Origin: Rebecca billardiae RCC1528
Lineage: Eukaryota; Protista; Haptophyta
Assembly (NCBI GenBank): GCA_965240325.2
Contig: OZ251231.1
Coordinates: forward strand, 930,001-994,000
Reading direction: 5' to 3'
DNA length: 64,000 nucleotides
Part shown: positions 27,650 to 64,000 of the stretch, one piece after another
How the letters are laid out: the number at the start of each line of letters is the position of its first letter
Numbering within the stretch: the first letter of the stretch is position 1
The notes under the pieces: model-generated
The model's input: the letters and a program-made list of their open reading frames with translations, nothing else
Told to the model about the DNA's origin: nothing
Databases searched by the model: none
Position numbers and translations under genes: made by a program

Positions 27650-27799
27650 CCGCTGAGCCGAAGACGGGCTCACAGGGTTTCTGGGACGGGTGGAGGGGGT
27701 TCACTTTGAACTTGCTCAAGCGACAAGCGGATGATTGTACCCGGTACCGCAATGTAGGGGTTCGTCGGAGGCCCGGGCCCCCCTCCGCCTCGCCTGCAG

Positions 27800-34856: not shown

Positions 34857-35122
34857 GCCTTTGTCGCAGGAGACAGCGAGACGCCTCTTTACGGTCGTCT
34901 ACGGCCAGGGGCGTCACGGCCAACCGCACAACTGCCCCACCGGCCAACCTGCGATTCGCGGAATCCGACCTCTCTCCACCCAACCTGAAACCGCAAGGGT
35001 GGTGGTCGGCCGGTAGTGGGGTCCGGCGCTTCGCCGTCCGGCGGAACCGAGCGTGGGGTGGGCGCGAGGTTCACCGCGAGATCGCGACGCCGGCCGTCGA
35101 CACCAACTGGACGCGAAGGGAC

Positions 35123-44386: not shown

Positions 44387-44708
44387 CGCAGCCGACCGGT
44401 CCGTACGGCGCGCGGCGCAGCAGCAGACTACGATGATGCATCGGCAATGTGCGCGTCGCTCCGCATCACTAATTCATCGCCATTGCTGGCTGCTTATTAT
44501 GCTACGTACCGTATATATATATATATATATAGTGCATGTGTCCTCCTGCATGAATGATGATAACCATTCAGGCGGGCATTGCCGGGTTGCACCCGGCAAT
44601 GCTGCATTCACCCCGGTCCTACCGGAATGCAGGGCTCGCCCCGCTGGCCGCTCCGTGACCGTCAGCGCCGCGCGCCACACAGGCCACCACGACTTCATTA
44701 TCATCAAT

Positions 44709-45985: not shown

Positions 45986-47305
45986 ATGGTACTGCCGGCA
46001 CACATGGTATGGACTATGGTACTGCTGGGCGCATGGTATCCATGGCACTCACATGGCATGGTATGGCACCGCTGTGCACATGGTATGGTACTGCTGCAAG
46101 CATGGTAGTATGGTACTGCTGCACGCATGATGGTATGGTACTGCTGCTCGCATGGTATGGTACTGCGGCGCGCATGGTATGGTACTGCTGCGCGCACTGT
46201 AGTGTGGTACTGCTCGCTCGGTGTGCATGGTATATGGTACTGCATGGTATGTTATGGCCTACTGCTGCGCGCATGGTATGGTACTGCTGCATGCATGGTA
46301 GGTACTGCTGCGCACATGATGGTATGGTACTGCTGCGCGCATGGTATGGTACTGCTGTGCGCATGATGGCGGTATGGTACTGCTGCACACATGGTGGTAT
46401 GTACTGCTGCTGCGCGCATGGTATGGTACCGTGCCGCGCGGCATGGTATGATACTGCTGCACGCATGATGGTATGGTACTGGCGGTACTGCTGCGCGCAT
46501 GGTATGGCACTGCTGTGCGCATGGTATGGTACTGCTGCGTGCATGGTATGGTACTGCTGCACGCAAGAAACAAGCGCGCAGGTGGCGGGACGGCCAAGCA
46601 AGCAGGAGTGGTGGGAGAAGCAAGCGCGCAGGTGGTGGGAGTGCTCGCAGGTGGTGGGAGAAGCAAGAAGCAGCAGCTCGAAGCAGCAGGCACTCCGATG
46701 CGGCACCTCCCGAAGCTGCTGCATCCTTCTGACCGCCCGCGGTTTGCCACGAAGCGTCCGCAGACTCGGCGAGCCGCACGCGCACGCGGTGCGCGCAGCG
46801 GTCATGGCGCTGGGTCCGGCGAGCAGCCGGGGTGAGGTTCAGGTACGAGGGGCGCACACTATTCCGCATGCGCCTTGGCACCGACCACGCGCCGCATCCA
46901 CTGGGAGATCTGCGGCCGCAAGAAGCGCGCGCCTTGGCGAGGGCGCCACGAAGCATCCGGTAGACCCGCCTGCGGAGTGCTTCCGCACCGCCGGCCGGGG
47001 CGGTCCGGCACTGCTTGCTTGGTGTTTGTCCGGCTTCCTCAGCTCATACATCATCAGTCCTCACTCCTTCACCGATCACTGCGCATCATGAAGGGAGCGA
47101 GCAACTGATGTAAGCACCTTCACGGGTCCTGCTCTCTTGCCGAACCGTGGCGGTCCGGCACTGCTTGCTTGGTGTTTGTCCGGCTTCCTCACCTCATATG
47201 TACATCATCAGTCCTCACTCCTTCACCGATCACTGCGCATCATGAAGGGAGCGAGCAACTGATGTAAGCACCTTCACGGGTCCTGCTCTCTTGCCGAACC
47301 GTGAG
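45986..47305. mobile_element. Foldback-like element, copy 2: forward satellite (~45986-46565) + core copy (~46565-47149) + ~150-bp tandem duplication (~47150-47303); right arm missing
   Basis: The core is nearly identical to 45030-45600 (caagcgcgcaggtggtgggag repeats, ...ggttcaggtacgagggg..., ...catcatcagtcctcactccttcaccgatc...). Confidence 0.6.
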
Positions 47306-47332
47306 GAACGAGCCGGTGGAGCAAGGGCGGTC

Positions 47333-48403
47333 AGGGCTGCGAACTCCCAGTGCCGCGAGTGAGAGGAGGTTGGGTATCGATCAACTCGTGCGCCCTCGCG
47401 GCGCAGCGGCTATGTCTCCTGGGGCGCCGCCCTGGAGGGCGCGTGGGGTGCGCACGCCGCGTGCTCCTGCGCCCGCGGCAGCGGGCGCGGACACGGCGCG
47501 CGTGGTTGGTCGCATGCTAGACAGCACGTAGTACCCCCCCACGCCGCGCGCCGCGCTCGCCGGCGCCCTCGCCGTGCCTCAGGCCAGCCCGCGCCCGCGC
47601 GCCGCACCAAGATCCAGTTGTAGCCACGCGCCAGCCGCCGGCGCGCGCGCGGTGTGCGGTGCGGTCGGCGCGGGGCGGGCGCGCGCCCGGGGCGAGGCTC
47701 GTGTACGATCGGCGCGCGCCATGCCGCCACGCGTCGCCGAACACGAGCTTGATCACGTTCCACGCGGCTGCTGATGGGTGCTCGTCGAGCATTCCTCAGC
47801 CATCAGAAATGAGCTTGGACAAGCGGCTGTGAGCGCGTCAGTGCGAGGAATGCGACGACTTGGGGACTCTTGCGCCATCATAGGATGCCAATCGTTCACA
47901 CATCAGTGGTCTGCGCATGTCTATCGCGCTTCGCTGCCTTCCCGTGATCGTCTCAACATGAGCATTTTCAAACTTGGCCAATGCACACTCGACAGCAACG
48001 CGTGCGCCGACCCATGCGGGCGCCAGCGTGGCGGCGCGTGGCGGCATGGCGCGCGCCGATCGTACACGAGCCTCGCCCCGGGCGCGCGCCCGCCCCACGC
48101 CGACCGCACCGCGCACCGCGCGCGCGCTGGCGGCTGGCGCGTGGCCACGGCTGGCTCTTGGTGCGGCGCGCGGGCGCGGGCTGGCCTGAGGCACGGCGAG
48201 GGCGCCGGCGAGCGCGGCGCGCGGCGTGGGAGGGCACTACGTGCTGTCTAGCATGCGACCAACCACGCGCGCCGTGTCCGCGCCCGCTGCCGCGGGCGCA
48301 GGAGCACGCGGCGTGCGCACCCCACGCGCCCTCCAGGGCGGCGCCCCAGGAGATCGATACCCAACCTCCTCTCACCGGCGCGGCACTGGGAGTTCGCAGC
48401 CCT
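47333..48403. mobile_element. Long inverted repeat: ~400-bp arms (47333-47739 / 48030-48403) around a ~290-bp spacer; MITE/foldback-like
   Basis: agggctgcgaactcccagtgccgcg...atgccgccacgcg matches the reverse complement of the right arm with few mismatches and one ~30-bp indel. Confidence 0.75.
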
Positions 48404-48878
48404 TGCGAGGAGGGATCCGACACTCCCCTTGATCCGAGCGACCTTTGAATCATCATCATCACTACATCTCTTGCTGTTCCCGGGGACGTAGCTGGGGGAG
48501 TTGACTGACAGATTGCACGAAAAACCGTTGGCCCCAATTGGGATCTGACTAAACTGTATTCCTCGGGATACCTATTGGAAGGCCATCAACCTTGTAAGAA
48601 TCACCGGACTTCGCGTGTCCTACCGGAAAACTCGCTCCGCTCGCATGCTTGTTCTTACAGAACAACCAATGCGAGCGGGGCTCGCGATAAAGAGCGAGTG
48701 ACTCACTCAGTTTACAGTTACTCAGCGACGCGACGCCATTGAGTATGGACGAACATCACCCACTACAGTCTGCGTGATGTGCATGCGAGGGCAGGTATTA
48801 TTGCAGCACATATGTGAGCATGCAGCAAATGCCGATACACACCATGCCGAAATAACTGGTGATGTATACACACACACA

Positions 48879-48946
48879 TATATATATATATATATCTATA
48901 TATATATATAGATATATATATCTATATATATATATATAGATATATA
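48879..48946. repeat. Interrupted (TA)n microsatellite
   Basis: tatata with occasional tcta/taga; further (TA)n tracts at 29570-29610 and 49421-49450. Confidence 0.95.
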
Positions 48947-49418: not shown

Positions 49419-49455
<37 letters not shown>

Positions 49456-49672: not shown

Positions 49673-49762
<90 letters not shown>

Positions 49763-49770
49763 GAGAGAGA
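49673..49770. repeat. (GA)n microsatellite
   Basis: More than 40 perfect GA units. Confidence 0.98.
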
Positions 49771-49858: not shown

Positions 49859-51406
49859 CTAAGGCTGCCCCATGTGGCTGTGCTGCTCAGTGTCATCGTC
49901 CGATGATGCCAGTGCGAGGTGCGCTTCGAGGGGGAGGTGGTCCGATGGATGGACACATGACGGCAGCGCGCCGTGAGCTGCGAGCTCGGACTCGTCCGGG
50001 AGGTCGAGAACCGCGCGCGCACGCACGCCTTGCTCCACCAGCACGTAGTCGAGGGTGCCCTTGAAATCGGGCGTGTAGTTGGTGTGCACGGGCTCGCGGC
50101 CGAGCACTTGCCGGTACGCGCTCTCCAGGCGAAGGGCGTGCGAGAGCGCTCGTGGGCGCAACGGCGGCTGCGGGGGTGCTGCGTTGGCGGCGGGCGCGTC
50201 CTCTCTCGCAGCCGCCGCCCGCAGCGCTGTCACCGGCACAAAGTGGGCCGGGTGATGCGGGTGCGATGGGTCGAGGGTGCGCGATCGCATCAGCTCATAC
50301 ACACCGCTCTCGGGGCACAGGCCAGCGGCACTCGGTGTCGCGCCGCCACTGCCGCCACCTTCTTCGCGCTGTGGTGTCGAGTTGAGGTCCGCGCCGATCA
50401 CGACAGGCCACGCCGTGCGCGGCGCGCCATCGGCTGCGCTCACCTCCGCGCGGAACGCGTGCAGCGCGCGGCACAGCAGCTCAGCCTGCAGGGCCTTCAG
50501 ACCCGGCACGCGTGGGTCCCAGTGCAGGTGCGAGTTGGCGACGCAGAGGCCTCGGGCGGTGTGCTGCCCCTCGGCGTTGGCGAGACGAAGCGCGGTGAGC
50601 AGCACAATCGAGCCTCGCGCCCTCGCCTCCTCCACCACCGCTGCCCCCAGCGCGTCGCCTTCGGCCGCATCCAACACGTCCGCGAGCGGAACGGCCCGGC
50701 GCTCGGCGAGCGTGAAGCGCGCGCGCCGGTGGAACGTCGCGCAGCCGTGCGGCGCCAAGCCGCGGCGGGTGCGGCGGCAGGCCAGCATCCCGGCGTACCC
50801 AGCCGCGCGCATCGCGGGCTCCAGCTCCGCGTCGTACGCCGCAGCGTCCACCTCCTGCAGGCACAGCACGTCAGCTGTGAGCTCCTCTGTCAGCTGGCGC
50901 TTGAGCGTGCGCCAGCGGAGTGCCCAGCGGAGCGCCCACGCCGGGCAGTGGCGGTGGTACTCAGGCGAGGCGGTGGATTGCGACATGATGTTGTACGTGA
51001 CCACTCGCGCGATGACCGGCTGGGCCCCCGGCGGGCGGGGCGCGCACACAAGCTGCCGTGGTGCGCGCGGGCCAAACTCGAACACGACAGGTGCGGTCGT
51101 CCGCACCGCGCTGGGCAGGCCAGTGTCGACGCCATCGACGTTGAGAGGCGTCACGGTCAGACGGAGCTTCCGACCTACGTCAGAGTCCGTCGGCGTGTAC
51201 GCGATATCGCCGCCCACGCGTACCCAGGGCTCGTCTGGCGAGCGCCCTTCGCGCATCCACTCCGCGCGGTGCGCGTCCTGCGCAACGTGCATCATCATGA
51301 GCTTGGGGCAGAGCTGCACACCGACGATGGGCGGAGCGGAAGGGAGGTGCAGCCGATGCACGACGGGCGTTGCGCGCACGTCGTCGGGCGCGCGTGGGCG
51401 CTTCAT
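49859..51406 (-). CDS. CCR4/PDE12-family exonuclease-endonuclease-phosphatase (deadenylase / 2',5'-phosphodiesterase-like)
   Basis: N-terminal WVRVG...YTPT.SDVG..LRL domain; catalytic VTYNI, LCLQEVD, ANSHLHW, GADLNS, TLDYV, PSDHLPL. Confidence 0.92.
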   Translation of the reverse strand: MKRPRAPDDVRATPVVHRLHLPSAPPIVGVQLCPKLMMMHVAQDAHRAEWMREGRSPDEPWVRVGGDIAYTPTDSDVGRKLRLTVTPLNVDGVDTGLPSAVRTTAPVVFEFGPRAPRQLVCAPRPPGAQPVIARVVTYNIMSQSTASPEYHRHCPAWALRWALRWRTLKRQLTEELTADVLCLQEVDAAAYDAELEPAMRAAGYAGMLACRRTRRGLAPHGCATFHRRARFTLAERRAVPLADVLDAAEGDALGAAVVEEARARGSIVLLTALRLANAEGQHTARGLCVANSHLHWDPRVPGLKALQAELLCRALHAFRAEVSAADGAPRTAWPVVIGADLNSTPQREEGGGSGGATPSAAGLCPESGVYELMRSRTLDPSHPHHPAHFVPVTALRAAAAREDAPAANAAPPQPPLRPRALSHALRLESAYRQVLGREPVHTNYTPDFKGTLDYVLVEQGVRARAVLDLPDESELAAHGALPSCVHPSDHLPLEAHLALASSDDDTEQHSHMGQP

Positions 51407-51688
51407 GCATGCTCGCTTGCAAGTCAGCACTACCAGCAATCACGAAACGCGGTCGCCATCGTGCAAGCCAATACATCAGTACCCCCATACTGGTACAGCA
51501 GCAATACTTTTTTACTAGAACAGACAGAGTAGAGAGAGTGACAGAGACTCCTCATCCGGTCAAGACTCATCACAGACAAGAGACGACTGTCGTCAAGTAC
51601 TGTGGTGACAACGACCGACGGCTCGTCAGATAAGTATGCTACAGTATGCTGCTGAAGACTACAGCATCACTCATCAGCGGACCTCGTG

Positions 51689-54449
51689 TCACATATGCTT
51701 GCCCTTGGCCTCCTCGTAGTCCGGGTCGTCAGACTCCTCGCCCTCAGTCGGCGACTCGTCGTCACCGCTGCCATCGAAATCAATCGCAATGAGCCGATCG
51801 GATCTGCCAGGCTGGCTGCGCGCCTCGACGCTCGGCCCGCTGCCCAGCTGGCGCGGGTACCCGCGCGCGCTCCTCCAGCTATCCACCCCTTGGAATAGCC
51901 GGCGGAGCATGCCCCAGGCGTCCGTCAGACTCCCCGCCTCCACATCCGGCCGCAACTCGTTGACCAGATCTGCGAGCGCATCTTCCGCTCGGCGCAGCGC
52001 GTGGTCGGGCGCCGGGATGGAGCCCGCCGGTGCGCTGGGGGCGCAGACCACGGCTGTCCTTGGGCTCGTGTCTCGCGGCGTGGGCTTCCTCTTCTTCGCC
52101 CCCTTGGCCGAAGGCGACTTGTTCGCCGGGGCCTCCCGTCTGCGGATGGCGTGCTCGATGGTGAGGGGCACGACCGGAGTCACCTGGCGGGTGGGTGCGC
52201 GCCCGCAGGGGCGCCGAGGGGCGCACGCGTCGGCGAGCGGTGTGCGCAGTGATGCACGGCGCTCCGGCGGCGCGGCGGTCGGGGCGAGCGCGCGCACCGC
52301 GCGGCCTGATCGCCGGGTCTCCGTGGGCAGCTCGGCGCTCGCAGGGCGTGGGCGCGCGCCCGGCAGCGCCTTGCGCGGTCGCTTGGCGCCCGAAGCGGTG
52401 GCGAGCGGCGCGTCCGAGGCCTCCGCCGGCGCACCGGCCGACTCGTCCGCTGGCGCCAGCGGTGCCGAGGACTCGGCGGCGGAGAGCAGCTCCGGCGGCG
52501 TGTTGGCGATGGCCCACTTCACCTGCGCCTGCCGCACCCTGAAGACGAGCTGCATCAGGGACAGGCCGCCACACACGCCCGCTGCAGCCGGCGCGCCGCC
52601 CGCCGCGCCGCCCGCCGTGCCGCCGCCCGGTGCGCGCGCTCGCTGCGTGAGGCGCTCCTTGGCGTGGTCGAGCTGGAGGCCGTGCTGCTCCTCGTGCAGC
52701 CGGACCCAGAACAGCGCGCCGCACGTGAGGCGCGCGTACAGCAGCTGCGCCCGAGCGGCGATCGAACGCGCGCACACGGTCAGCACGCGCACGCGACGCA
52801 GCGCGCGCGGACGGCCGCGGCCACGCCCGCGCGCAGTCGCCGCGCCGCGCGCGCACCGGCTTCGGCTTCCACTTGCGGAACTCTGCGTACGAGAGGCCAA
52901 TCTCGCTCGCCATGTCATCCTCGGTCGACAGCCCGAGATACTTGCACAGCTCGTCGTACACCGGCCGGGACGTGCCGTCGCCGCGCCCGGTCGCGATGGT
53001 GATCACCGACTCGAGCGAGACGCTGTCGCGCGACGGGTCGGCGAGCACGTCGCCCGTGAACCACGCGTGCGGCCGCCCTGCGTTGAGCACCTTCTCCTTC
53101 CAGCACACGTACGTGCCGGAGAGGCCGATGCCAGACTTGTGGAGGGTGTACCGAGTCGCGCCCTCGCGCATCAGCGCGTCCTGCAGCGGCGGCCAGCACC
53201 CGACCATCCGCCCGCGCACGCCGGGCAGCTCGATGCACTCCGCGCCACTCAGCTTGCACTTCATGTCCGGAGCCCTCGCGATCTCGCTCAGCTGCGCGAG
53301 CAGCGAGTCCCGCTCGAGCCGCAGCTGCTGGCCCTGCACGCTCGCGCGCAGCGGGCGCGCGCTCTCGTCGTCTCCAAACTCGGGGAGCGGGAAGAGCCCA
53401 GTGCCCGGCGGCAGGTACGAGGCGGCGAGCTCGTCCAAGAGGTCGTCCGGGCACACGAGGCGGCGCGGCGCGCCAACCGCCGCACCGCACCCGCCTCCGC
53501 CACCCGCGGCGGAGCTCGACGGCTCCGGCTCCGCCTGCGCGCGCTGCACGCGCGATGGAGGCGGCACAAACGCCTCCAAGTCCTTGTCATCGTACTCGAC
53601 GGTCACGCTGACGCCCCCGGACTCACTGCAGCCGCCGCACGTGTGCACAAAGGCCACGCGCCCGGGGAACCAGCGCCCCTTCGCCAGGAAGTTCGCGCTC
53701 ACGCGCTCCCCGACCCGCAGCCTCTCGGCCGGGCGCGAGCGCAGTTCCGCCGCGAGGTTCCAGTAGATGAAGCGCGTGCACCGGCTGCCGCCGCGCGCGC
53801 GCATGCTCGCGCGCACGGTGTCGACGAGCGCGTGCAGCACGCGGCCCGTGAGCTCGCGGTTCTCGCCGCAGGCGAACGGGTGTGCCGTGAGAATGCCCGC
53901 CTGCACGATGAAGCGGTCGCGGTCGCGCTCGCCGCCAAAGTCGAGTGCCGCGCCAGCGCGATCGAGGCTGACGCCACAGACGGCGCGGCTCACGGCCGCA
54001 TCGTCGAAGAGATCGTCCAGCTGCGGGCCGAAGCGGCCAATCCCCGCCCGACCGCCCACCTCGTCCACCGTGATCACGAGCAGCTCAGCAGCGCTGTCGG
54101 CCGGTCCAAGCTTCGCCTGGAAGAGCTTGGAGCCGACGCCCTTGAGGTTGTGCCGGCCGTACGTGACGTCCTTCTGGTGACCCGTGTCAAAAAGCTTGGC
54201 CAGCTCCTCCACGTAAGTGTCCGTCTCGACGACGAGGAAGGGCCCCTCGGCACGCCACGGCTCGTCCTCCGTCGGCACAGTGATTGTCTCGTGCAGGGCC
54301 ACGCGCACCTCCGAGTCAAGGCTGAGAGCGTTGTCGACGACCTCCTTGAAGGCGCTCGACAGCCGCGCGTGGACCTCCTTCTGCGGGAGCCAGCAGCTAG
54401 TCGAGGTCTGCGCAGGGCCGGCGACGACGCGCTGCTGCCCGAGCGACAT
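51689..54449 (-). CDS. Divergent MORC-like GHKL protein with an inserted Tudor-like domain; predicted introns 52745-52856 and possibly 52184-52297
   Basis: AFKEVVDNA (motif I), GRHNLKGVGSKL (motif III), LLVIT, TRFIYWNL, LAASYLP, SVQGQQL and GTYVCWKEKVL follow MORC order; Tudor-like LRVGERVSANF...GRWFPGRV...VEYDDKDLE. Confidence 0.68.
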
Positions 54450-54820
54450 GCCGAACCGGCTATTACGACGGAATCGCACGCATCAAAATCAAAATTCAGG
54501 CCATCAAATAAACCCCCAATACCGCACACTGACCGCCCGTCTGCATAGTTGCTGGCGCAAGCGCCACCGAAGCCGTCCGAAGCGCGCCGAACGCGAGCTT
54601 CGGCGGCGCCGGCGACCGCCGCGTCGGGCTGACGCCACCGCCGCTGCCTGACCGTCGTGCCGGACACTCGGACCGAGTGGTAGTAGCACGTAGAGCGACT
54701 CGTGTCTCGTAGGAGTAGGACTCCCGTCACTCCGCGGCCAGTCGCCAGCGGCCAGGCTGATCGGCTCAGCCGACGTACTCTCCCTTCGGCTCCATCCCAG
54801 GTCTTGCCGGCTGGCGAGCG

Positions 54821-55630
54821 TCAGCCCCGGGACCGCTTGAAGCTGGCGGACACCCATTTTCCAGCTGTCGTGTCCCACTTCTTCCCATTGGGCGGGCGGC
54901 CTCGGGGCTGCGCGTAGCCGCCGTCGGCGGGGGGCTCCGATGGCCGCGCGGGCTTCTCTGGAGCCGTGTAATCCGGGTCGTCGACGTACTCGCCGCGCTC
55001 CGCGTCCCAGAGCTTGCCCTGCGGCGGACGACCCTTCGGCCGCGTGTGCCCCTTTGGCGGCTGCTCTCGCGCGGGCTTCTCTGGAGCCGTGTAGTCCGGG
55101 TCGTCGACGTACTCGCCGCGCTCTGCGTCCCAGAGCTTGCCCTGCGGCGGACGACCCCTCGGCCGTGTGTGCCCCTTTGGCACCTCTCGCGCGGGCTTCT
55201 CTGGAGCCGTGTAATCCGGGTCGTCGACGTACTCGCCACGCTCGGCGTCCCAGAGCTTGCCCCGTGGCGGAAAACCGCGCGGCCGCTTGTGCCCCTTCGG
55301 CGGCTGCTCTCGCGCGGGCTTCTCTGGAGCCGTGTAATCCGGGTCGTCGACGTACTCGCCGCGCTCCGCGTCCCAGAGCTTGCCCTGCGGCGGACGACCC
55401 TTCGGCCGCGTGTGCCCCTTTGGCGGCTGCTCTCGCGCGGGCTTCTCTGGAGCCGTGTAATCCGGGTCGTCGACGTACTCGCCGCGCTCCGCGTCCCAGA
55501 GCTTGCCCCGCGGCGGACGACCCTTCGGCCGCGTGTGCCCCTTTGGCGGCTGCTCTTCGGGAGACGAGTCGGATTCTCCCTCGGACTCACTCCCACTCTC
55601 GCTCACCTCGATCGCGCGTTTTGGTCCCAT
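54821..55630 (-). CDS. Repeat protein with five 40-41-aa units plus one divergent unit, each an AT-hook-like (K/R)GRPP followed by GK.WD...G.(Y/W)V
   Basis: DNA unit spacing 123/120/123/123 bp; acidic Ser-rich N-terminus; the frame is preserved through the indel. Confidence 0.8.
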   Translation of the reverse strand: MGPKRAIEVSESGSESEGESDSSPEEQPPKGHTRPKGRPPRGKLWDAERGEYVDDPDYTAPEKPAREQPPKGHTRPKGRPPQGKLWDAERGEYVDDPDYTAPEKPAREQPPKGHKRPRGFPPRGKLWDAERGEYVDDPDYTAPEKPAREVPKGHTRPRGRPPQGKLWDAERGEYVDDPDYTAPEKPAREQPPKGHTRPKGRPPQGKLWDAERGEYVDDPDYTAPEKPARPSEPPADGGYAQPRGRPPNGKKWDTTAGKWVSASFKRSRG

Positions 55631-55994
55631 GATCGGGTGCGAGCTCGGGCTTGGCGGTGCGCGGCGGTGGTGGCGGCGGCGGCAGCGGTGGGCCCCCCCG
55701 AACGAACGGCGAAAACTCAGAACTCTCGGAGGCCCCGCGTGGCCGCGCCGCCGCGCGCGCGGCAAGACAACTTTTAAAAATAAAACTGTGCCTGCCCGCC
55801 GCTGCCCGTGCGGGCGCGGTCGGGTCACCGGTCACTGGTCAGCAGTGCCTCCGGACTCACAGTGCCTCCGGACTCACATCGAATTGGTCCGGTTGGCTGT
55901 GGGGGTTTTAACCGTCGTCGCGTTATTCTGCTCCTAAACTCGGCTGTGTGGAGGCCGGTTGGCGCCTTGGCGGACGGCTCCCTACCACCGCCTC

Positions 55995-56474
55995 ATGCCC
56001 GTCGCACGAGCGCTCGGATCGCGACTTCTGCCGGCGGCCGCTTCCGTCGTAGCGCCACCTCGGCAGCTCCTTGCGCCTCTGCGCGCTCCCACGTTCGATC
56101 AGTGGGTGCGCAACAAGCAGCCGGTGGCCAAGCTGGAGGCCATCTCACGGCGAGCACTCCCTGCGCGCCGCACGGATCCATCCAAGGTCCAGGCGCCGAT
56201 CGTTCGGGCTGAGGGCAAGCCATCCGTGTTGCTGCACCCCGAGCCCACCGCCCAGGTCCTCCAAGCCGGAGAAGCCGCCCGTGCGGAGCTCGGCAAAATG
56301 CTCGGCAAGCTGAGGGCGCATTTCAAGACATTTCAAGAGCGGGACATGTCTGGTGAGCACGGCTGGGCCCGAGTTGGAGCACGAGCCAAAGCGAAGAAGC
56401 AGAAGAAGATGATGCGAAAGTTGGAAGCAGCAAGCCAACAGCGGCTCGTGCTTGATGTCTACGAGCACGCTTAA
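55995..56474 (+). CDS. Hypothetical basic protein with a mitochondrial-presequence-like N-terminus
   Basis: MPVARALGSRLLPAAASVV... is Arg/Ala/Leu-rich with no acidic residues; Lys-rich helical C-terminus. Confidence 0.55.
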   Translation: MPVARALGSRLLPAAASVVAPPRQLLAPLRAPTFDQWVRNKQPVAKLEAISRRALPARRTDPSKVQAPIVRAEGKPSVLLHPEPTAQVLQAGEAARAELGKMLGKLRAHFKTFQERDMSGEHGWARVGARAKAKKQKKMMRKLEAASQQRLVLDVYEHA

Positions 56475-57499
56475 GACGCTGGACAGGACTGTAAAGTTTC
56501 GACGGTCACGCGGTCGAGGGGCGGGTGACCGCGACGGCTGCGGACGTCCGAGCTGCACCCGGCGCCGGCAGTCGCGACCGCGCGGCAGCCCGCGAGACTT
56601 AGGAGCTAGTGACACCTCAGCCTCAGATGCGCGAGTCACTAAGAGTAAGAGTGAGCTACTGGTCAGTCGTCATCTGAGTAACTTTAAGAGTCAGAAATCG
56701 TAGTAGTCACGCTGAAGCAGCTCGCTCGGATCCAGCAGAATCGGGATCCGCACCCCGGGTCGCTGATGATTAATTATATGAGAATTCTCAATAATATTAT
56801 TAATAAGTCATTAAGATACTAAGCAGCAGACTTTTCAGTGTAACTCAGCAGACTTAGTTAATATCAAATCTGACGAGCGAGTTCTAATAGTAACTAATAA
56901 TAATAGAGACTAAACTCGGTGCCGGGTGCGGCCTGGCAGCCGCCGCCTGAGTAACACTGACTGACCGTGTAGCGTCACCGGTCAGTGTCGGTCAGGGCTG
57001 AGCCCGCGCTGACTCGGCGGCTGACTGCTGAGCCGCTGGCCCTGACGACCGGAGTCGGCGCGGCTAGTGGGACCGGCGACTTCACAAGTGACAACTGAAG
57101 GTCCGGTCTGTCCCAGCATTAGGAGTCTACACGACCAAGGGTGGAGCGGGATAGCTCTATGCCTGGAATACGGACCCATAAGGAATCAAGATGACGACTT
57201 GAATAAATCAAGCGCGGCGCGCAGCGCCGCGGGCCGTGGCGAGCGGTGCGCGGCGCCGCGGCGGCCGCGGGCCCGGCCGCAGGCGCCGCACCGCCGCCCG
57301 CGCCGCGCGCCGCGGCCGGCGCGGCCCCGACGGCCGGCACTGCGCCGCTCGACGACTAACTAGTCATCGTCAGACGTCAGTGGCTCAGTCGTCGTCAGGA
57401 CGAGCAAGAAAGGACGCCTTGTGCGCAGCCTTCCTCAACCGCGACAGCACCCGCTGGGACGCACCGCCGCTGTCGCGAGCTGCGCACTGGGCTTCGGAT

Positions 57500-57700
57500 C
57501 TGCTTGCTTGATGCTGTGGTGTCCACCGCAGCGTACCACTGCCGTACGTACCTCGAGAGGTCAAGTTGGTGCAGCTGCGGGAGGTTGAAGGACAGCCACA
57601 CGAGCATGGCCAAGGTTCCGTCGGCAAGCGAAGCTCGCTGGGTCGTCTTCGCCAGCGTCATGTTGCGCCCCGCGCGCTCAGTGTCCGACTCTTGCTAAGT
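57500..57700 (-). pseudogene. hAT transposase C-terminal dimerisation-domain-like remnant
   Basis: ESDTERAGRNMTLAKTTQRASLADGTLAMLVWLSFNLPQLHQLDLSRYVRQW fits the S..ER.FS.M...KT..R..L...TL..L..I..N.P pattern; in-frame stop immediately upstream. Confidence 0.5.
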
Positions 57701-58415
57701 GAGAGTGCGCACGAGCTGCACAGGCGGTGGTGATCAACAGCAGCGGCGATGCGCGCACGAATATCCGATAGCGATCATGTAGTCCCTTGGACTCTCGAGA
57801 CAGTGTCATCGCAGCGGAGGCGCTCTGACCTGGTCAAGCCGCCCGCGCTCATTGCGAATGCTCACGTTCCAGCAAGCGGAAAGGCTCATCGAAGACGACG
57901 CTTTGCTGCTCGAGCACGCAAAGAGTGACTTGCTCCGAGAACTCGACAACCGGACGGGCGGTGGAGCCACTCTCGACTACTCACCAAGAGCATTCCTCAG
58001 GACCGCAACCACATCTGGTCGCACACCATCTGCTCACATGTCGTTGGGCCGCGTGCACGTGGAATTGCACTCGGTCAGACACGTGATCGCTCATGCAGTC
58101 GGCAAGCAGCGGCAAGGAGCCGGGGTTGCGGGCCACCAAGGTGTCCCAAGGCTCTGAGCATACCCACAGACGACATTTGAGGCCACCTGCGCCGCCACAA
58201 CCGCACCGCCAGTGCGTGGATTCCCGGCCTACGCTCGCTGTGGACCACGCCGCCGCCGGCCAGGCAGCCATGCTGACAAATAAGAGGACGGGTGTGGGCG
58301 CCCAGCCACGTCTTGATTTTCTGGCGGTGGGCTCGATCGACAACTTGATGATTTTTTCCTGCATCTGCGAGCATACGCTCAAACCCGATTCCAGCCTTGT
58401 ACACGACGTCGCTCA

Positions 58416-60944
58416 TCATGTCATCATCGCGAATGTCAGTGAGGCGTCGCGGGCGGTTTTCGGACGGCGCCACGCCTCGGCCGGCGCGTGGCCCATGCAC
58501 CATCGCCGGCGCTTCTCGCCCGGGAGCACATAGTCGGCGGTGCGCGCGCAGCCGTTCGCCTCGCATCGGCGGCGCTTGACGCTCAGCGCGTCCGGCGGCG
58601 CGTGCTGCGCGCACCAGCGGCGGCGGCGGCGGCTCGCGGTCGGCAGGGCATACGACGCTTCGAGCTCGCACCCCTCGCGTTCGCACGTGCTGTACGCCCG
58701 GCCGCGGGAAGGCGGCGGCTCCTTCTGCGGAGGCGGCGGCATGCTAGCCGGCACGTGCAAGCAGCGCCTCTCGACGCACGCCTTCCGCCGCCGCCGCGGG
58801 TTTCGGCAAGGGCCGCACTGCCCGCACGGCGCGCGGCGGCAGCCGGCGCACACGCCGCAGCGCTTGAGCGTCAGCCGGGGCTCGCGCACGCACACGCGCT
58901 TGAGGCAGCGCCGCGCGCCCGAGGGGTGGCGGCACGCGCTGCACGCGCCGCACGGCGCGCGCTTGCAGCCCGCGCACGTGCGGCAGCTCAGCCTGAGGAA
59001 GACGCACTTGGAGCGCGTGCATGGCTTCTGCCGCTGCGGGTGTGTGCAGTTCGCGCACGAGCCGCACGGCGGGCGCGTGCAGCCAGCGCACTGGCCGCAC
59101 CGCCTGCTCGTCGCCATCGGCGTCTCCCGGAAGCACGCGCGCCGCACGCACCGCCGCGTCCCAGACGGCTCGAGGCAGTGGGGGCACAGGCCGCACGGTC
59201 GGCGCATGCACGCCGAGCACGTGCCGCACGGGGCGGCATGCGCCTCCCTCGCGCGCTTGCGCGGCGGCTTGCTCGACGGCTCGACGCACTTGCGCGCGAC
59301 GCAGCGCTGCTTGCGCTCGGGACGGAGGCAGTGGGCGCATTGCCCGCACGGCGCGCGCGTGCACGCCGCACACGTGCCGCACGGCGCGCGGTTGCGGCGC
59401 CGCTTCGGCTGCACGGCGCCGTCGTCGGTCTGGCCGTCGGCCGCGGCGCCGTCGCGCGCGGGCGGGGCGGCCGGCGCGCCGACGCCGACGCCGACCGCCG
59501 CTCCGCTCGGCGCAGCATCGCGCTCCTTGCGCACGAAGATGGGCTCGAGCGCGCTCGCCGGGTGGAGGGCCTTGAGGTGGCTGCTCACATGGTGCCTCCG
59601 GTTGAGCCGGAACCCGTTTTTGGCGCGGCCGGGGATGAACGTCGTGCACACCCACTCGCCGTCGAGCAGGGTCGCGAATGGGCAGCGGTAGAGGCCTCTC
59701 GCGGAGCTGCGTCGCACCCGCTCGGCGCCGCCGGCCGCACCTTCGTGCGTAACAGCCGCCCCGCCCTCGCCGTCGCCGCCTGCGTCCGCAACTACAGCCC
59801 CGCCGCCGCCGTCGTCCGCGCGGCCATCGCCGTTCGGCGCGTGCGAGCGCGATGGCACCGAGGGCGGAGGCAGTGGCCCAGCGCGCTCGCTGCCACCCAG
59901 GCTGCTCGGCAGCGAGACGAGCGCGGCGGCCGCCGCAGCTTCGCGCGCTCCGTGCGCCGACGGGGCGATGCGAGTGCTGCCGCCCGCCGCACCGCCAGGC
60001 GCAGCGCCGCCGTCGAGGACGGCCGGCGGGCCGCCGCGCGCGGCGAGAGCATCGTCGAGCTGCCGCCGCCTGGGCCGCTTGCGCTGCCGGCCGGCCGGAG
60101 CGAATAAGAGCGGTTCTGGCGCCGGCTCCGACTGGCGCTTGCGCTTGGCGTGCGCCGCAAGACCGCGCGCACCGCTCTGCGCGTTGAGCCGACGCGTTTC
60201 CTCGCCTCGCGCCGCGCGCGCGCCCCCGCCGTTCGAGCGTGTGGGCGCGCGCGGCGCACCCGCCGGAGCGTCCGTCGGAGAGTCCGGCCTGGGCGCGAAG
60301 AGCGCCCGTTCGAGCTGTTCGTGCGCGTGGAGGACGTCGACCGCGCCCGGTGGCGCGTGGCGCGCGCACCATGCCCGCGAGCGCACCACGTAGCGGGCGC
60401 CCGGACGCCGGATGCCATGTGAGGCATTCTCCTCGCAGCCATCATGCAAGCACGAGACGTGCTTGTACGCGAGGTCGGCGGCGTTGGGCTGCCTCTGCAT
60501 CTCCTGCATCGCCTCGGCGATCTGTTGCACGTCGTGCTGCATCACCTCCTCGAGCACCACGCCGATCATGCGCGCGGCGCGCATCGCTGCACCGCTCACA
60601 GGGCACGGCCCGTCGCGCATGATTCTGCCCTTGGGCTGAGGCTCGACCAGGCGCGCCACATGCTCCACGGCCTGCTCGGAGAGGTGCTGCAGAGCCGGCC
60701 ACGCGTCCGCGCCTTCACCACCGGCATGCGCGTGGCGTTGTCGCAGCAGCCGCACCTGCGCCTGCTCCAGCCACGCACGCAGGCGCGCACGCCCCTCCGA
60801 GCTGACCGTGCGTTTGCCGCGCAGCCATTCGCGCAGGTCACGCTCACGAATGGCGCTCGCCCTCGCCGCGTGCTCCACTCCCAGCCCAGCGGCCTCCAGG
60901 TGCCGCGCGACGCGGGCCTTGAGTCGCGTCGGATCGTTGGCCAT
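58416..60944 (-). CDS. Multi-zinc-finger protein: HTH-like N-terminus, three EsV-1-7-like Cys/His motifs, one C2H2/BED-like finger and five tandem zf-CXXC domains
   Basis: Five CxxCxxC-x4-CGxCxxC-x8/9-C-x4-C units; C-x3-GC...WC-x2-HAP motifs; ARHLEAAGLGVEHAARASAIRERDLREWLRG. Confidence 0.85.
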   Translation of the reverse strand: MANDPTRLKARVARHLEAAGLGVEHAARASAIRERDLREWLRGKRTVSSEGRARLRAWLEQAQVRLLRQRHAHAGGEGADAWPALQHLSEQAVEHVARLVEPQPKGRIMRDGPCPVSGAAMRAARMIGVVLEEVMQHDVQQIAEAMQEMQRQPNAADLAYKHVSCLHDGCEENASHGIRRPGARYVVRSRAWCARHAPPGAVDVLHAHEQLERALFAPRPDSPTDAPAGAPRAPTRSNGGGARAARGEETRRLNAQSGARGLAAHAKRKRQSEPAPEPLLFAPAGRQRKRPRRRQLDDALAARGGPPAVLDGGAAPGGAAGGSTRIAPSAHGAREAAAAAALVSLPSSLGGSERAGPLPPPSVPSRSHAPNGDGRADDGGGGAVVADAGGDGEGGAAVTHEGAAGGAERVRRSSARGLYRCPFATLLDGEWVCTTFIPGRAKNGFRLNRRHHVSSHLKALHPASALEPIFVRKERDAAPSGAAVGVGVGAPAAPPARDGAAADGQTDDGAVQPKRRRNRAPCGTCAACTRAPCGQCAHCLRPERKQRCVARKCVEPSSKPPRKRAREAHAAPCGTCSACMRRPCGLCPHCLEPSGTRRCVRRACFRETPMATSRRCGQCAGCTRPPCGSCANCTHPQRQKPCTRSKCVFLRLSCRTCAGCKRAPCGACSACRHPSGARRCLKRVCVREPRLTLKRCGVCAGCRRAPCGQCGPCRNPRRRRKACVERRCLHVPASMPPPPQKEPPPSRGRAYSTCEREGCELEASYALPTASRRRRRWCAQHAPPDALSVKRRRCEANGCARTADYVLPGEKRRRWCMGHAPAEAWRRPKTARDASLTFAMMT

Positions 60945-61388
60945 GGATGGGCGATGGCGCCGACAGCGGCGGCCATCGACCAAGACTGTGTCGATCTCGC
61001 CTGCCTGAGCTGTGTGCGACTGTGCGTCTCTTATTCGGAGTAAACTGTAGTATACGGTACTGTCCAGTGTCTATTGTACTACTAGCATACTGCCGAGCCC
61101 GTGGACTCGTTGACTCATGAGTGGCCTCCGCCCAAGGGGAGTCCCCTTGCTCCGCCCGTTACCAGTACCCGGGGCCAAATTACCCGGCCCCGCGCGGACT
61201 TGAACTGTGACTCAGATTGCCAGAGTCTCACCAGAGTCCGAGACGACCGGTCCGGTTTGAGGTTGGGTGAGGGTGGTGGTTGGTTGGGGGCTGGCCAGGG
61301 TAGGGCTGGAGGCTTCGGCCGCCAGTCTGATCACCCGGAGCCCGTTATAAAGGGGAAATTTATACGGGTCCGCTGATTGTGAGAGTCC

Positions 61389-61389
<1 letters not shown>

Positions 61390-61432
<43 letters not shown>

Positions 61433-61452
61433 GGAGAGAGAGCCGAGAGAGA
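61390..61452. repeat. (GA)n microsatellite
   Basis: About 20 GA units plus a degenerate tail. Confidence 0.95.
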
Positions 61453-61583
61453 GCGGTTACTATAGTCAGGATCACCGCCGGACTCAGTAGTAGGACCGGG
61501 GACTCGTAAGTAAGGAATCGGTCACGGTACTAGACAAACAGTGAAACACTTAAGAGTAAGACCCGCGAACTCGAGGTCACTAG

Positions 61584-62552
61584 TCAGGAGCGCATCCTGC
61601 GCAACAGCAGTGCGAATCCCAGCGCGGCGCGCGCGGCCAGGCTTCCGGAGTCGTGTACCCGTCTGCGCCTGCGCGCGAGCACGAGGCGCTCGCCCCGCTG
61701 GAGCGACCCACGCCCCAGCAAGATGGCGCCCGACAGCAGTTCGTCCAGATCCTGCTGGCATCCGTCCACGAGCGCCGCGCGCTGGGCGCGTCGCGCGTCC
61801 TGCTCCTCCACGCTCGGGGCGGCGGCGTCGGCGCTGCCAGCTTGGTGCGCAGCGCGGGATGGCTCCTCACCAGGCGGCACGCGGCTCCAGATCTGCAGCT
61901 CGGCGGGGACGCTCGGCCACGAAGGTAACGGGATCGCCTCCGCACGTGCGAACCCTCCTGCATGCAGGGCTTGCAGAGCGCTCGGGCCAGCGGCCTGCGA
62001 CCCCGCATTGCCGCCATCCACCCAGGGCGAGTCGACGACGAGCGCGACGTGCGCACCGTCGAAGGCAGCGATGGCGTCCGCGGCCATCGACATCACGTGC
62101 GCGGGAGCGGTCTCGTCCACCTCGCACGGCGGCCAGCACAGCATGAGCGCCGAGCAGCGCACACCGGCCGCAGCGCCGGCATCGCCCTTGTCGACGCGCG
62201 TGAATGGGGGTGGCATGCACCAGCGCGCGTCGCGCTGGAGGGCGTGCTGCCAGTTGGGCCGCGCCTCGGGCTCAAGTGGCGCGGCATCGTATGCCTGCAC
62301 GCGCACGCCACGCGCGCGCAAGAGGCTCGCCCACAGGCCCGTGCCGGCGCCAATCTCGACCACGCCCGCGGGCTGCGCGACATGCGCGAGTGCGTCGAGC
62401 GCGCGGTCGCACGGTATGGCCCACGCGTAGATGCGGCGGAGAGGAGCCATGTACAAGGCCGCGTACGCCGCCTCGAAGCGCCCGACAAGCCCCGTGAGGG
62501 ACATCTCCCTCACGCAGCGCGAATGGAGCCGACGGAGCTCCGCCATCGTCAT
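61584..62552 (-). CDS. Class I SAM-dependent methyltransferase, uncharacterised family; start uncertain
   Basis: YAWAIP...ALDAL, motif I VVEIGAGTGLW, motif II VQAYD, ALMLCWPP. Confidence 0.82.
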   Translation of the reverse strand: MTMAELRRLHSRCVREMSLTGLVGRFEAAYAALYMAPLRRIYAWAIPCDRALDALAHVAQPAGVVEIGAGTGLWASLLRARGVRVQAYDAAPLEPEARPNWQHALQRDARWCMPPPFTRVDKGDAGAAAGVRCSALMLCWPPCEVDETAPAHVMSMAADAIAAFDGAHVALVVDSPWVDGGNAGSQAAGPSALQALHAGGFARAEAIPLPSWPSVPAELQIWSRVPPGEEPSRAAHQAGSADAAAPSVEEQDARRAQRAALVDGCQQDLDELLSGAILLGRGSLQRGERLVLARRRRRVHDSGSLAARAALGFALLLRRMRS

Positions 62553-62708
62553 CAACAACGCGGCCTCCTGAAACTCCAGAATGTTCGAGCAGAGATCGCA
62601 TCTCCGTGCAGACCTGGGCCCAGGATCGACTACGATAATTATTCGCGTTCGCGCCAATCAATCAGCGCTCTGATCAAACGCCCGGGCCCGCGAACGCACC
62701 GCATCGTA

Positions 62709-64000
62709 ATGCGCGCTAACGCGCTGTTGCACGCGGGCCTGCTCGCGGCGCTCGTCGGGCCTGGCGCGTCGTTCCGCGCACCCGGCCGCGTGCACCCCGG
62801 TGTGCGTGCTCCCATCCTACGCCGGGTGACGCAGCCCGCACCCATCGCGTGCTTCGCCAGCAAAACACTCGAGGACGAGGTCCCGCGCGAACGGCTGATT
62901 GAGATCTGCAACGCGCTGCGCGAGCGATGGGGCTCCGTCGAGCGGATATACGACACACTGCCGCACGCGACCGCGGACGGCGATGATGACGATGTCATCG
63001 ATATGGATGCCTTCATGCAGGCGCTCGTCGCCGCCAAAATCAGCGCGACGCCGCAGGAGATGGGCTCCATCTTCAAGGCATTCGATCTGGACAACTCGGG
63101 CACGCTCGAGCTCGAGGAGATCAGACTAGCGCTTCGCGAGAGCGGCGCGATCTTCCGCACGTATCAGCAGTCGCTCACCACGATGCTTGCCGCCATCGGC
63201 TCGGCGGCGCTCTTCGCCGCCGGCATCGCCGCCACGCGCGGGCTCTCGGACGCGGGCGACTTTGCGACCGCGTACATTGTGGAGGACTCGCTCTCGGTGG
63301 ACAACCTGTTCGTCTTCGTGCTGCTCTTCGAGTACTTCCGCGTGCCGCTGTGGCTGCAGCAGCGCTGCCTCACGCTCGGCATCGCCGGTGCGCGGCACGC
63401 GTCGACTCCGCTGCCGCGGCCGCGATCCGCGCGCGCGCGCGCACGCCCCCGCCGACCGCGCACCTCCCGCCCGCACGCGTCCCCTGCGCGCGCGCGCGGG
63501 CGCGCAGGCGCTGTGGTGCTCCGCGGCATCTTCATCGGTGGCGGGCTCGTGCTGATCGACAAGTTCCACGGGCTCGTCATCGGCTTCGGCCTCTTCCTCG
63601 TCTACTCGTCGTACAGCCTGCTCGCCGGCGGCGACGACGACGAGGAGGACGACATCGCGGACAACGCGGTCGTGCAGTGGGCGACCAGCACGCTCAACGC
63701 GACCAGCGACTTCGACGGAGGCCGGCTCTTCACGAAGCGCGGCCTGGAGCCGGGGGCGGCCGTGGGCGAGGGCCCTCTCGGCGTGCTGCTCTCAACGCTC
63801 GGCCGGCCCACGCCGCTGCTCCTCACGCTCATCTGCGTCGAGCTCTGCGACATCGTCTTTGCGGTCGACTCGATCCCGGCGGTGTTTGGCGTCACGTCCG
63901 ATCCCTTCATCGCGTTCACGTCCAACATCTTCGCCATCATCGGCCTGCGCTCGCTGTACTCGGTGCTGGCCTCGGCCGTGCAGGACCTGGTGCGCGCTCG
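62709..64000 (+). CDS. TERC: Plastid-targeted TerC-family membrane protein with an N-terminal EF-hand pair; partial (intron 63388-63507; next intron starts 63990)
   Basis: Signal peptide ending GASF plus an Arg-rich transit peptide; EF loop DLDNSGTLELEE; TerC motifs EDSLSVDNLFVF, G|AVVLRGIFI, VELCDIVFAVDSIPAVFGVT, FTSNIFAIIGLRSLY. Absent from the ORF track because the frame stays open to the window end. Confidence 0.93.
   Translation, partial: MRANALLHAGLLAALVGPGASFRAPGRVHPGVRAPILRRVTQPAPIACFASKTLEDEVPRERLIEICNALRERWGSVERIYDTLPHATADGDDDDVIDMDAFMQALVAAKISATPQEMGSIFKAFDLDNSGTLELEEIRLALRESGAIFRTYQQSLTTMLAAIGSAALFAAGIAATRGLSDAGDFATAYIVEDSLSVDNLFVFVLLFEYFRVPLWLQQRCLTLGIAGARHASTPLPRPRSARARARPRRPRTSRPHASPARARGRAGAVVLRGIFIGGGLVLIDKFHGLVIGFGLFLVYSSYSLLAGGDDDEEDDIADNAVVQWATSTLNATSDFDGGRLFTKRGLEPGAAVGEGPLGVLLSTLGRPTPLLLTLICVELCDIVFAVDSIPAVFGVTSDPFIAFTSNIFAIIGLRSLYSVLASAVQDLVRA

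Follow-up and report, generated by a model that had tools for sequence, protein, structure and literature searches.

Do adjacent genes that encode unusual chromatin and DNA readers form one functional module, or do they stand side by side by chance? The question is raised by positions 51,689 to 62,552 of a 64,000-nucleotide stretch of the Rebecca billardiae RCC1528 genome (assembly GCA_965240325.2, contig OZ251231.1, positions 930,001 to 994,000 of the forward strand), the whole of which is called the window below. A sequence-only reading had described this segment as a cluster of minus-strand genes for a MORC-like GHKL/Tudor protein (here G1), a tandem AT-hook-like repeat protein (G2), a hAT-like fragment, a protein with CXXC, EsV-1-7 and helix-turn-helix (HTH) elements (G4) and an S-adenosylmethionine (SAM) methyltransferase (G5), and had seen in it a candidate silencing or genome-defence locus, or else the cargo of a mobile or viral element. 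The gene-by-gene reading was largely right; the silencing, genome-defence or cargo interpretation was unsupported. G1 was confirmed, at the level of predicted fold and motifs, as a very divergent MORC-like protein, and the neighbours G1, G2 and G4 are indeed genes for unusual readers of chromatin or DNA. We consider it fairly probable that G1, G2, G4 and G5 are independent host genes, adjacent by chance in the compact, GC-rich nuclear chromosome of a Pavlovales-like haptophyte.

MORC ATPases play a central part in the silencing of transposons by animals and plants. Haptophytes are ecologically important and include Emiliania; to our knowledge, almost nothing is known of MORC ATPases in this group.

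The MORC-like protein G1

A word-index search with G1 returned just two sequences: P0001, the unspliced open reading frame (ORF) of this organism in Logan, and the MMETSP transcript P0002, whose 847 amino acids were 44-48% identical to G1 and collinear with it. The two exons of G1 were handled separately, and not joined, in all searches, alignments and the structure model. The features of the gene are given below, GC3 being the GC content at third codon positions and pLDDT the predicted local distance difference test score.

51689-54449, minus strand: G1, two exons, predicted MORC-like GHKL and transducer module with a Tudor/Agenet-like insert
52857..54449, minus strand: G1 exon 1 (531 amino acids), with the GHKL-like domain, the Tudor/Agenet-like insert and the start of the transducer (S5)-like domain; from the GC3 frame and P0002
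53745..54422, minus strand: predicted GHKL (Bergerat-fold)-like ATPase domain, amino acids 10-235; pLDDT 77-95, family-invariant motif residues, weak HATPase_c_3 match in P0081
53559..53720, minus strand: putative Tudor/Agenet-like domain, approximately amino acids 244-297, inserted at the junction of the GHKL and transducer-like domains
52745..52856, minus strand: frame-shifting GT..AG intron of 112 nucleotides (nt), predicted from the continuous ORF of P0002
51689..52744, minus strand: G1 exon 2 (351 amino acids and stop), with the rest of the transducer-like domain, basic stretches resembling nuclear localisation signals and an acidic tail ending ..DDPDYEEAKGKHM

Neither exon had a match in sequence searches of Pfam, NCBIfam and the PDB, Pfam gave none for P0002, and a PDB profile search with a 13-sequence alignment of the G1 family found nothing. 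The curated Pfam thresholds of HATPase_c_3 and Morc S5 were reached neither by G1 nor by P0002; sub-threshold matches to HATPase_c_3 were observed in two of 24 family members, the best being that of P0081 (E 1.7e-3, 18.8 bits against a cut-off of 25). The AlphaFold2 model of exon 1, made from a 24-sequence alignment, had a pLDDT of 70 and a predicted template modelling score of 0.71. Searched against the PDB with Foldseek, it matched the ATPase modules of MORC3, MORC4 and MORC2 best (E 9e-9 to 2e-6, over approximately 420 columns), with SMCHD1 (4e-4) and then Hsp90 and topoisomerase II (approximately 1e-2) lower in the list.

A full HMMER search, in which the query was the alignment of P0002 with the two exons and the cut-off an E of 1e-3, returned 406 proteins and resolved three regions of the profile. 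Positions 10-230 and 330-700 matched proteins mostly of 550-790 amino acids that have no Tudor insert. This G1-related, paralogous family takes in proteins of Emiliania huxleyi, and the E. huxleyi member bears the UniRef name "Morc S5 domain-containing protein". The third region, positions 235-320, matched proteins with up to 22 tandem stretches, and in those of them that were scanned Pfam recognised Agenet, Tudor_5, PTM_DIR17_Tudor and Chromo_MORC2_6th. P0003 matched this region with an E of 1.9e-101 over 20 stretches. Compared by BLASTP with the four Tudor_5 repeats of P0042, the corresponding G1 segment gave E values of 6e-8 to 1e-6, and its direct Pfam matches were sub-threshold (Tudor_5, E 0.14; Chromo_MORC2_6th, E 0.16). 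The model of G1 was unreliable in this segment (pLDDT below 50), and the candidate aromatic-cage residues F252, W260, F261 and Y286 were read off the sequence. The MORC-like GHKL/Tudor call was borne out by the fold search and the motifs, for a protein that the sequence libraries left undetected.

Residues E36 and N40 of motif I (E-x-x-x-N) were invariant in the 13-sequence alignment. So were G98, G104 and G106 of motif III, G98...G104-V-G106-S-K108 (G-x-x-G-x-G-x-K); K108, after the motif known as the G2 box, was read from G1 and its orthologue P0002. In MORC2 the counterparts have assigned roles: Glu35 is the general base, Asn39 serves Mg2+ and Lys105 the alpha-phosphate, next to the glycines of the G2 box (PMC5811534). 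The motif II position of G1, placed by sequence position alone, reads V-E-T-D77-T78-Y and has none of the glycines of the G1 box (D-x-G-x-G); the Asp is kept in nine of the 13 family members.

These residues bear on whether G1 could be a catalytically compromised MORC-like scaffold, a pseudo-ATPase whose GHKL fold would be used for dimerisation or ligand binding only. This is a separate question, which does not compete with the readings of the locus as chance adjacency, module or mobile element. The replacement of DxGxG by ETDT, with its incompletely kept Asp, and the lack of any Pfam or PDB sequence match to G1 are consistent with such a scaffold. Against it stand the family-invariant E36, N40 and motif III glycines and the presence of K108 in both G1 and P0002, with the roles just cited from MORC2 (PMC5811534), as well as the transducer-like domain kept in the G1 model, and we hold a pseudo-ATPase to be quite improbable.

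The E. huxleyi relative P0110/P0202 (EOD15322.1) had no internal Tudor insert. Near its C-terminus it carried a Tudor-like segment, "..RRWYDGLVDDYEVSLHHITYDDGDDEWLRL..", matched by PTM_DIR17_Tudor with an E of 0.054. This C-terminal stretch suggests that the pairing of a MORC-like module with a Tudor-like one recurs, in a different arrangement, within the haptophytes.

The two-exon structure of G1 followed from the comparison with its orthologue. The GC3 phase indicated one coding frame from 54479 to approximately 52900 and another from approximately 52900 to 51689. P0002 ran uninterrupted across the frame change ("..FRTWKPKKRLFANLTLGALFWV..", with the alignment core KWKPK(K/P)-(R/L)L(F/Y)A..LT.GALFWV). 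At the same place G1 reads "..FRKWKPKP" in one frame and "LLYARLTCGALFWV.." in the other, the two being separated by a 112-nt GTGCGC...GGGCGCAG segment. Because the ORF of P0002 is continuous and the spacing matches exactly, this segment was taken as an intron. A frameshift or pseudogene had been considered and was dropped for the GT..AG intron on the same grounds. Exon 2, coding from 52744 to 51692 with a stop that ends at 51689, agreed with the GC3 frame and aligned with P0002 over the latter's C-terminal half and with the G1-related family, of roughly 560 amino acids, over its C-terminal domain.

The G2, G4 and G5 proteins

The features of the three other genes were the following, the residue numbers of the CXXC units of G4 being counted from the TTG at 60983.

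54821..55630, minus strand: G2, 269 amino acids from the first ATG (55630) to the stop (54821), six AT-hook-like units; from Tandem Repeats Finder and a motif map
58416..60944, minus strand: G4, 842 amino acids from the first ATG, Cys-rich; from Pfam and a GC3 of 0.9-1.0 in frame
60357..60452, minus strand: EsV-1-7 motif 1 of G4, amino acids 178-209; from a regular expression, the best Pfam stretch being amino acids 178-217
58761..59381, minus strand: five tandem, complete eight-Cys CXXC units of G4, amino acids 535-741; from a regular-expression map
58488..58685, minus strand: C-terminal EsV-1-7 motifs 2 and 3 of G4, amino acids 767-794 and 807-832; from a regular-expression map
61584..62552, minus strand: G5, 322 amino acids from the ATG at 62552, predicted class I SAM methyltransferase fold with a C-terminal helical extension

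Two Pfam families were matched by G4 above their cut-offs, EsV_1_7_cys (PF19114; E 2.9e-11, 43.4 bits against 25, in three stretches) and zf-CXXC (PF02008; E 1.8e-10, 41.1 bits against 26.5). All five CXXC units had a linker of 8-9 residues before the seventh Cys, and KFGG was absent from every one of them. The best PDB sequence matches were CXXC5, a Xenopus CXXC-domain protein (4hp1), TET1 and CXXC4 (E 5e-4 to 9e-3), DNMT1 being reached with an E of 0.4 only. The KQ or HQ dipeptide, which we take to be the CpG-reading one and mapped onto G4 from published structures, was found before the seventh Cys as KQ in unit 1 only; unit 3 has RQK and the other units R/K-rich loops. At the N-terminus the sole HTH match was a marginal one to HTH_65 (E 0.067). 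The CXXC and EsV-1-7 parts of the earlier description of G4 stood, on Pfam and the motif map, and its HTH part did not. We know of no report of CXXC and EsV-1-7 modules in one protein, the single protein search made with G4 having been uninformative.

Tandem Repeats Finder described G2 as five copies of a 123-nt period (92% matches, 54945-55556), to which the motif map adds a sixth, degenerate unit. Each unit reads (K/R)G(R/F)PPxGKxWDxxxGx(Y/W)V, after which DDPDY is present in five of the six. The cores are KGRP in three units, the canonical RGRP in two and RGFP in one, and the N-terminus is acidic and Ser-rich. There was no profile-level match to an AT-hook, a motif too short for statistics. 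AT-hook-like is a fair description of G2 at the motif level, the level at which Tandem Repeats Finder and the motif map upheld the tandem repeats. The Pfam families DUF4834 and DUF4585 were also returned for G2, with no significant single stretch, and were treated as compositional.

The acidic tail of G1 (GEESDDPDYEE, 51716-51742) and five repeats of G2 (GEYVDDPDYT, 54968-55483) had a 27-nt element in common, with 78-81% identity. The tail shared 21-22 of the 27 nt with each of the five tandem repeats, and DDPDY is not present in the G1 orthologue P0002. The shared element could be due to chance, could be a short linear motif or could result from a small sequence transfer between neighbours.

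In G5, motif I reads E66-x-G68-A-G70-T-G72, and E66, G68, G70 and G72 were invariant among homologues. The Pfam score for Methyltransf_23 was 24.9 bits, below the 27-bit cut-off, and the PDB profile matches spanned motif I only. The AlphaFold2 model had a pLDDT of 82 and gave 142 Foldseek matches in the PDB at E up to 1e-3, all of them class I methyltransferases among the matches listed. The top ones (toxoflavin N-methyltransferase, DnrK, cg3271, Bud23/WBSCR22, KsgA, METTL9 and PrmA) were about equally good and act on small molecules, ribosomal RNA, transfer RNA and proteins. DNA or histone enzymes (DNMT, N6-adenine DNA methyltransferase, DOT1, PRMT, SET) did not occur among the fold matches listed. 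The model, its fold matches and motif I bore out the identification of a SAM methyltransferase; since the fold is generic, G5 is not countable as a chromatin component. The closest named relative of any window protein was the Diacronema lutheri hypothetical protein KFE25_009816, 44% identical to G5; the G5 orthologues, the D. lutheri protein among them, were 51-56% identical by global alignment. More distant homologues were longer (545-579 amino acids) or shorter (200-245 amino acids).

Chance neighbours, silencing module or mobile element

Four further features define the surroundings of these genes.

49859..51439, minus strand: CCR4/PDE12-like exo-endo-phosphatase nuclease (Pfam Exo_endo_phos 1.1e-12, PDE12-like_N), between a repeat island and G1
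55959..56474, plus strand: ORF of 171 amino acids, the exact protein being called as a gene on four short Logan contigs; no Pfam family
57581..57679, minus strand: putative hAT-like stretch of 33 amino acids, "ERAGRNMTLAKTTQRASLADGTLAMLVWLSFNL", which fits ER-x12-RxxL-x7-LxxLxxNL
62700..64000, plus strand: EF-hand and TerC membrane protein (Pfam TerC 6.5e-35, EF-hand, GC3 frame), divergent from G5 and exceeding the window end

The cluster had been described as lying entirely on the minus strand. This held for G1, G2, G4 and G5; the plus-strand ORF at 55959-56474, between G2 and G4, interrupts the run. Approximately 12 of the approximately 18 window genes are on the minus strand, so that co-orientation is not unusual here (0.67^5, approximately 0.13), and gene density is approximately one per 3.5 kb. 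The window has a GC content of 62-79%, a strong GC3 bias in coding frames and GT..AG introns, and the studied segment (GC 0.62-0.75, GC3 0.85-1.0) is on par with the rest. The ratio of observed to expected CpG was approximately 1.2 window-wide, in genes, intergenic DNA and the studied segment alike. As there is no sign of CpG depletion, deamination pressure of the germline 5-methylcytosine type appears to be absent in this genome.

The intron of G1 also speaks for host genes, as do the orthologues of G1 and G5 (44-56% identity) in other algae, including D. lutheri. Scans of IMG/VR found no viral relatives of G1, G2 or G4; the G1 scan, made with a two-sequence alignment, extended to the JGI metagenomes and found no G1 relatives there either. 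In BFVD the matches were confined to weak ones of a generic GHKL kind, with E values of 4.6e-3 or more. The caveat of chance adjacency, already attached to the sequence-only reading, remains the leading explanation.

We propose that the three reader genes would be independently transcribed, as chance neighbours among unrelated genes. By analogy with MORC2 and MORC3, G1 would most likely dimerise on ATP binding through its GHKL and transducer domains and clamp or compact DNA, and its Tudor/Agenet-like insert may target it to methylated histone tails. G4 would most likely contact CpG-rich DNA multivalently through its five TET/CXXC4-type fingers. Judging from its motifs, G2 may be an HMGA-like minor-groove binder of the AT-hook type, and G5 would be a generic SAM-dependent methyltransferase.

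The neighbourhoods of G5 homologues were available for 39 metagenome loci, including two 15-kb TARA contigs, and none of these loci held a gene related to G1, G2, G4 or TerC. On the TARA contig L002 the neighbours were ankyrin, AMMECR1, Ddl, ERCC1, DnaJ, SacI and RPE65-GST genes. An ORF of 996 amino acids with two D-Ala-D-Ala ligase modules (5374-8364) was observed beside the G5 homologue of this contig, which looks compact, eukaryotic and algal.

Several points weigh against chance adjacency. The negative result on G5 neighbourhoods rests on distant homologues, whose identity over the greater part of the protein does not exceed 42%. Three readers in a row are uncommon; if approximately 5% of genes encoded readers, only approximately one such triple would be expected per genome by our own estimate. 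The DDPDY element shared by G1 and G2 could hint at a common partner or a common origin. Finally, in prokaryotes MORC genes are found next to those of DNA methylases, within restriction-modification neighbourhoods (PMC2292703).

Another reading is a functional, co-regulated chromatin module, in which G4, on CpG-rich DNA, and G2, on AT-rich DNA, would recruit or position the G1 clamp, itself a putative reader of histone methylation through its Tudor domain, for the silencing of repeats or foreign DNA, with G5 possibly adding a methyl mark. The three adjacent reader genes are confirmed, DDPDY is common to two of them, the intergenic spacers are short (370-640 nt), and the transposon silencing by animal and plant MORCs is established. 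The different pairing of MORC-like and Tudor-like parts in P0202 suggests that this ATPase family is generally coupled to chromatin readers, and the methylase neighbours of prokaryotic MORCs (PMC2292703) offer a parallel. However, the run of genes is split by the plus-strand ORF and by 2.8 kb of non-coding DNA, G5 is generic with unrelated genes around its homologues, and DDPDY is not kept in P0002. A KQ-type dipeptide, in the mapping described above, is present in only one of the five CXXC units, and since the CpG ratio is approximately 1.2 everywhere, CpG alone gives no specificity. The linked CpG- and AT-reading module of the sequence-only reading was not supported, given also that co-orientation is not significant, and we regard such a module as unlikely. 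Its more specific form, a haptophyte silencing system restricted to this lineage, in which the G1 clamp would be guided by G4 and G2, possibly via DDPDY, and joint function would keep the genes linked, is very unlikely. If it were true, the MORC-plus-reader neighbourhoods known from restriction-modification systems in prokaryotes would have an echo in a eukaryote.

The region between the plus-strand ORF and G4 was where a hAT-like fragment had been claimed. From 56.64 to 57.85 kb there is no ORF of 100 codons; the sequence is AT-rich with stops in all frames from 56.64 to 57.0 kb and shows no clear codon periodicity in the remainder. We take the spacing of the 33-amino acid stretch at 57679..57581, which is probably what had prompted the claim, to be that of the hAT C-terminal (dimerisation) signature. 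A regular expression for this spacing had a single match across the six frames of the window and none in 100 windows simulated with a Markov model; the pattern was post hoc, written after the sequence had been seen, and the match is a hint only. Ten pieces of 56.97-58.4 kb (nine pieces and one of 99 amino acids that includes the ER) yielded no hAT-related match in Pfam at E values of up to 1-5. Terminal inverted repeats had been suggested as a search across 56.5-61.5 kb: over 51-63 kb only GC-rich, low-complexity inverted matches of 70-93% were found, none of which meaningfully flanks that interval, and target-site duplications of 8 bp were not sought, there being no terminal repeats to anchor them. 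The hAT remnant was not confirmed by these searches and would be at most a tiny relic of 33 codons.

A third reading sees in the segment the decayed remains of cargo brought by a large mobile element or by an endogenous giant virus inserted here, with the hAT relic as the remnant of the transposase and the EsV-1-7 motifs as a sign of viral origin. The single 33-amino acid signature, the AT-rich patch of 0.4 kb at 56.6-57.0 kb, the nearby repeat island and the phaeovirus gene name borne by the EsV-1-7 motifs (PMC12993054) are consistent with it. Opposed to it are the lack of terminal inverted repeats and of other transposase domains, composition, GC3 and CpG that are those of host genes, the G1 intron and the orthologues in other algae. 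IMG/VR held no relatives of G1, G2 or G4, the weak BFVD matches were generic, and PADLOC matched no segment protein; large families of EsV-1-7 domain genes are moreover found in brown algae, which are cellular organisms (PMC12993054). Mobile or viral cargo was unsupported on these grounds and is, in our judgement, extremely improbable.

The rest of the window had been described as mainly housekeeping and did contain typical nuclear genes by Pfam: acetolactate synthase (in pieces), Leo1, an S8e-family gene, prefoldin, an APH-like kinase, a BK-type K+ channel, CDC50 and the EF-hand/TerC protein. The Leo1 (Paf1 complex) gene was located at 5673-6602 on the minus strand, 45 kb from the segment; its presence in the same window indicates that genes for chromatin and transcription factors are evidently not rare locally.

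Other observations concern the window at large. A plus-strand open frame of 690 codons (61929-63998) was considered in place of G5 and rejected: its GC3 phase fits only from approximately 62.7 kb, in the TerC gene, while that of G5 fits from 62657 to 61587, and G5 has orthologues. Three long ORFs with coding-type GC3 bias had no Pfam family, at 30633-34898 (minus strand, 1422 codons), 27758-29128 (plus strand, 457 codons) and 8221-9705 (minus strand, 495 codons). The repeat island that had been placed near the cluster is present at 44700-48353, the CCR4/PDE12-like gene intervening before G1. It contains oppositely oriented blocks of a 22-nt satellite (GGTACTGCTGCGCGCATGGTAT), a duplication (45087-45533 and 46608-47085) with a spacing of 1.5 kb and an identity of 99-100%, and a 324-nt inverted repeat (47415-47738 and 48030-48353) that is 97% complementary around a spacer of 291 nt. 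In the island the CpG ratio was approximately 1.0 and the TpG/CpA ratio approximately 1.5, compared to approximately 1.2 and 1.1 elsewhere. Long (AG)n and (AT)n microsatellites were observed in the spacers flanking the segment (48878-48946, 49422-49451, 49673-49770 and 61391-61453). Rfam and transfer RNA scans of 44-64 kb gave no matches.

The lasting interest of the locus lies in a MORC-like family invisible to Pfam, with a predicted internal Tudor domain and an atypical motif II, and in a protein that joins five CXXC units to three EsV-1-7 motifs. The G1 family, missed by the standard domain libraries, may offer an entry point to haptophyte heterochromatin. With a CpG ratio of approximately 1.2, one must ask what there is in such a genome for a CXXC protein to discriminate. 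If the linkage proved to be conserved, the locus would be a rare functional cluster of chromatin genes in a eukaryote, which is speculation at present.

Comparison with known systems

The 57581-57679 stretch shares with hAT transposons the spacing of their C-terminal dimerisation region; the locus differs from them in that it lacks a Pfam match to any family, terminal inverted repeats and an open reading frame. G2 resembles HMGA in its multiple short, basic G-R-P cores, its acidic or proline-rich spacers and its character as a small, low-complexity protein, and differs from it in that only two of the six cores are the canonical R-G-R-P. The GKxWDxxxGx(Y/W)V element that follows the cores is not known to us from HMGA.

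The CXXC units of G4 are of the short-linker ("type 3") kind found in TET1, TET3, CXXC4/IDAX and CXXC5, with which they share the arrangement CGxCxxC...CGxCxxC...C....C, the linker of 8-9 residues and the lack of KFGG, the motif of the CFP1/MLL/DNMT1-type domains that is missing from all G4 units. Unlike the TET and CXXC4/5 proteins, G4 has five tandem units in which TGHQ is not conserved, and these are joined to EsV-1-7 motifs and not to a dioxygenase, methyltransferase or PHD module. With the EsV-1-7 proteins (the IMMEDIATE UPRIGHT family of Ectocarpus and phaeovirus EsV-1-7) it shares three C-x4-C-x(16-22)-C-x2-H motifs, and it differs from them by its haptophyte-like genome and its CXXC fingers. 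Brown algae have an enlarged EsV-1-7 family, which is rarely met in other stramenopiles (PMC12993054).

G1 is like the MORC ATPases (human MORC2, MORC3 and MORC4 and the plant MORCs) in its predicted succession of a GHKL and a transducer (S5)-like domain, and its motifs I and III have nearly the same residue numbers as those of MORC2 (E35/N39 and G101/G103/K105). Its putative fusion to a domain of the histone-reader type also recalls theirs, CW in MORC3 and MORC4, and CW with a tudor/chromo-like domain in MORC2. It differs from them in that sequence searches of Pfam, NCBIfam and the PDB, one with a family profile included, gave no match, in that the glycines of the G1 box are missing and in that a CW zinc finger is absent, and its family has so far been found in haptophyte and environmental sequences. 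The putative reader of G1 is not C-terminal; it is inserted where the GHKL domain meets the transducer-like one, near the site where MORC2 has its CC1 coiled coil in the adjoining transducer-like domain. A wider MORC/paraMORC radiation of GHKL plus S5 proteins was described by Iyer, Abhiman and Aravind in 2008 (PMC2292703), and to this radiation G1 would add an architecture in which an atypical ATP-lid motif is combined with a Tudor-type reader built into the ATPase module.

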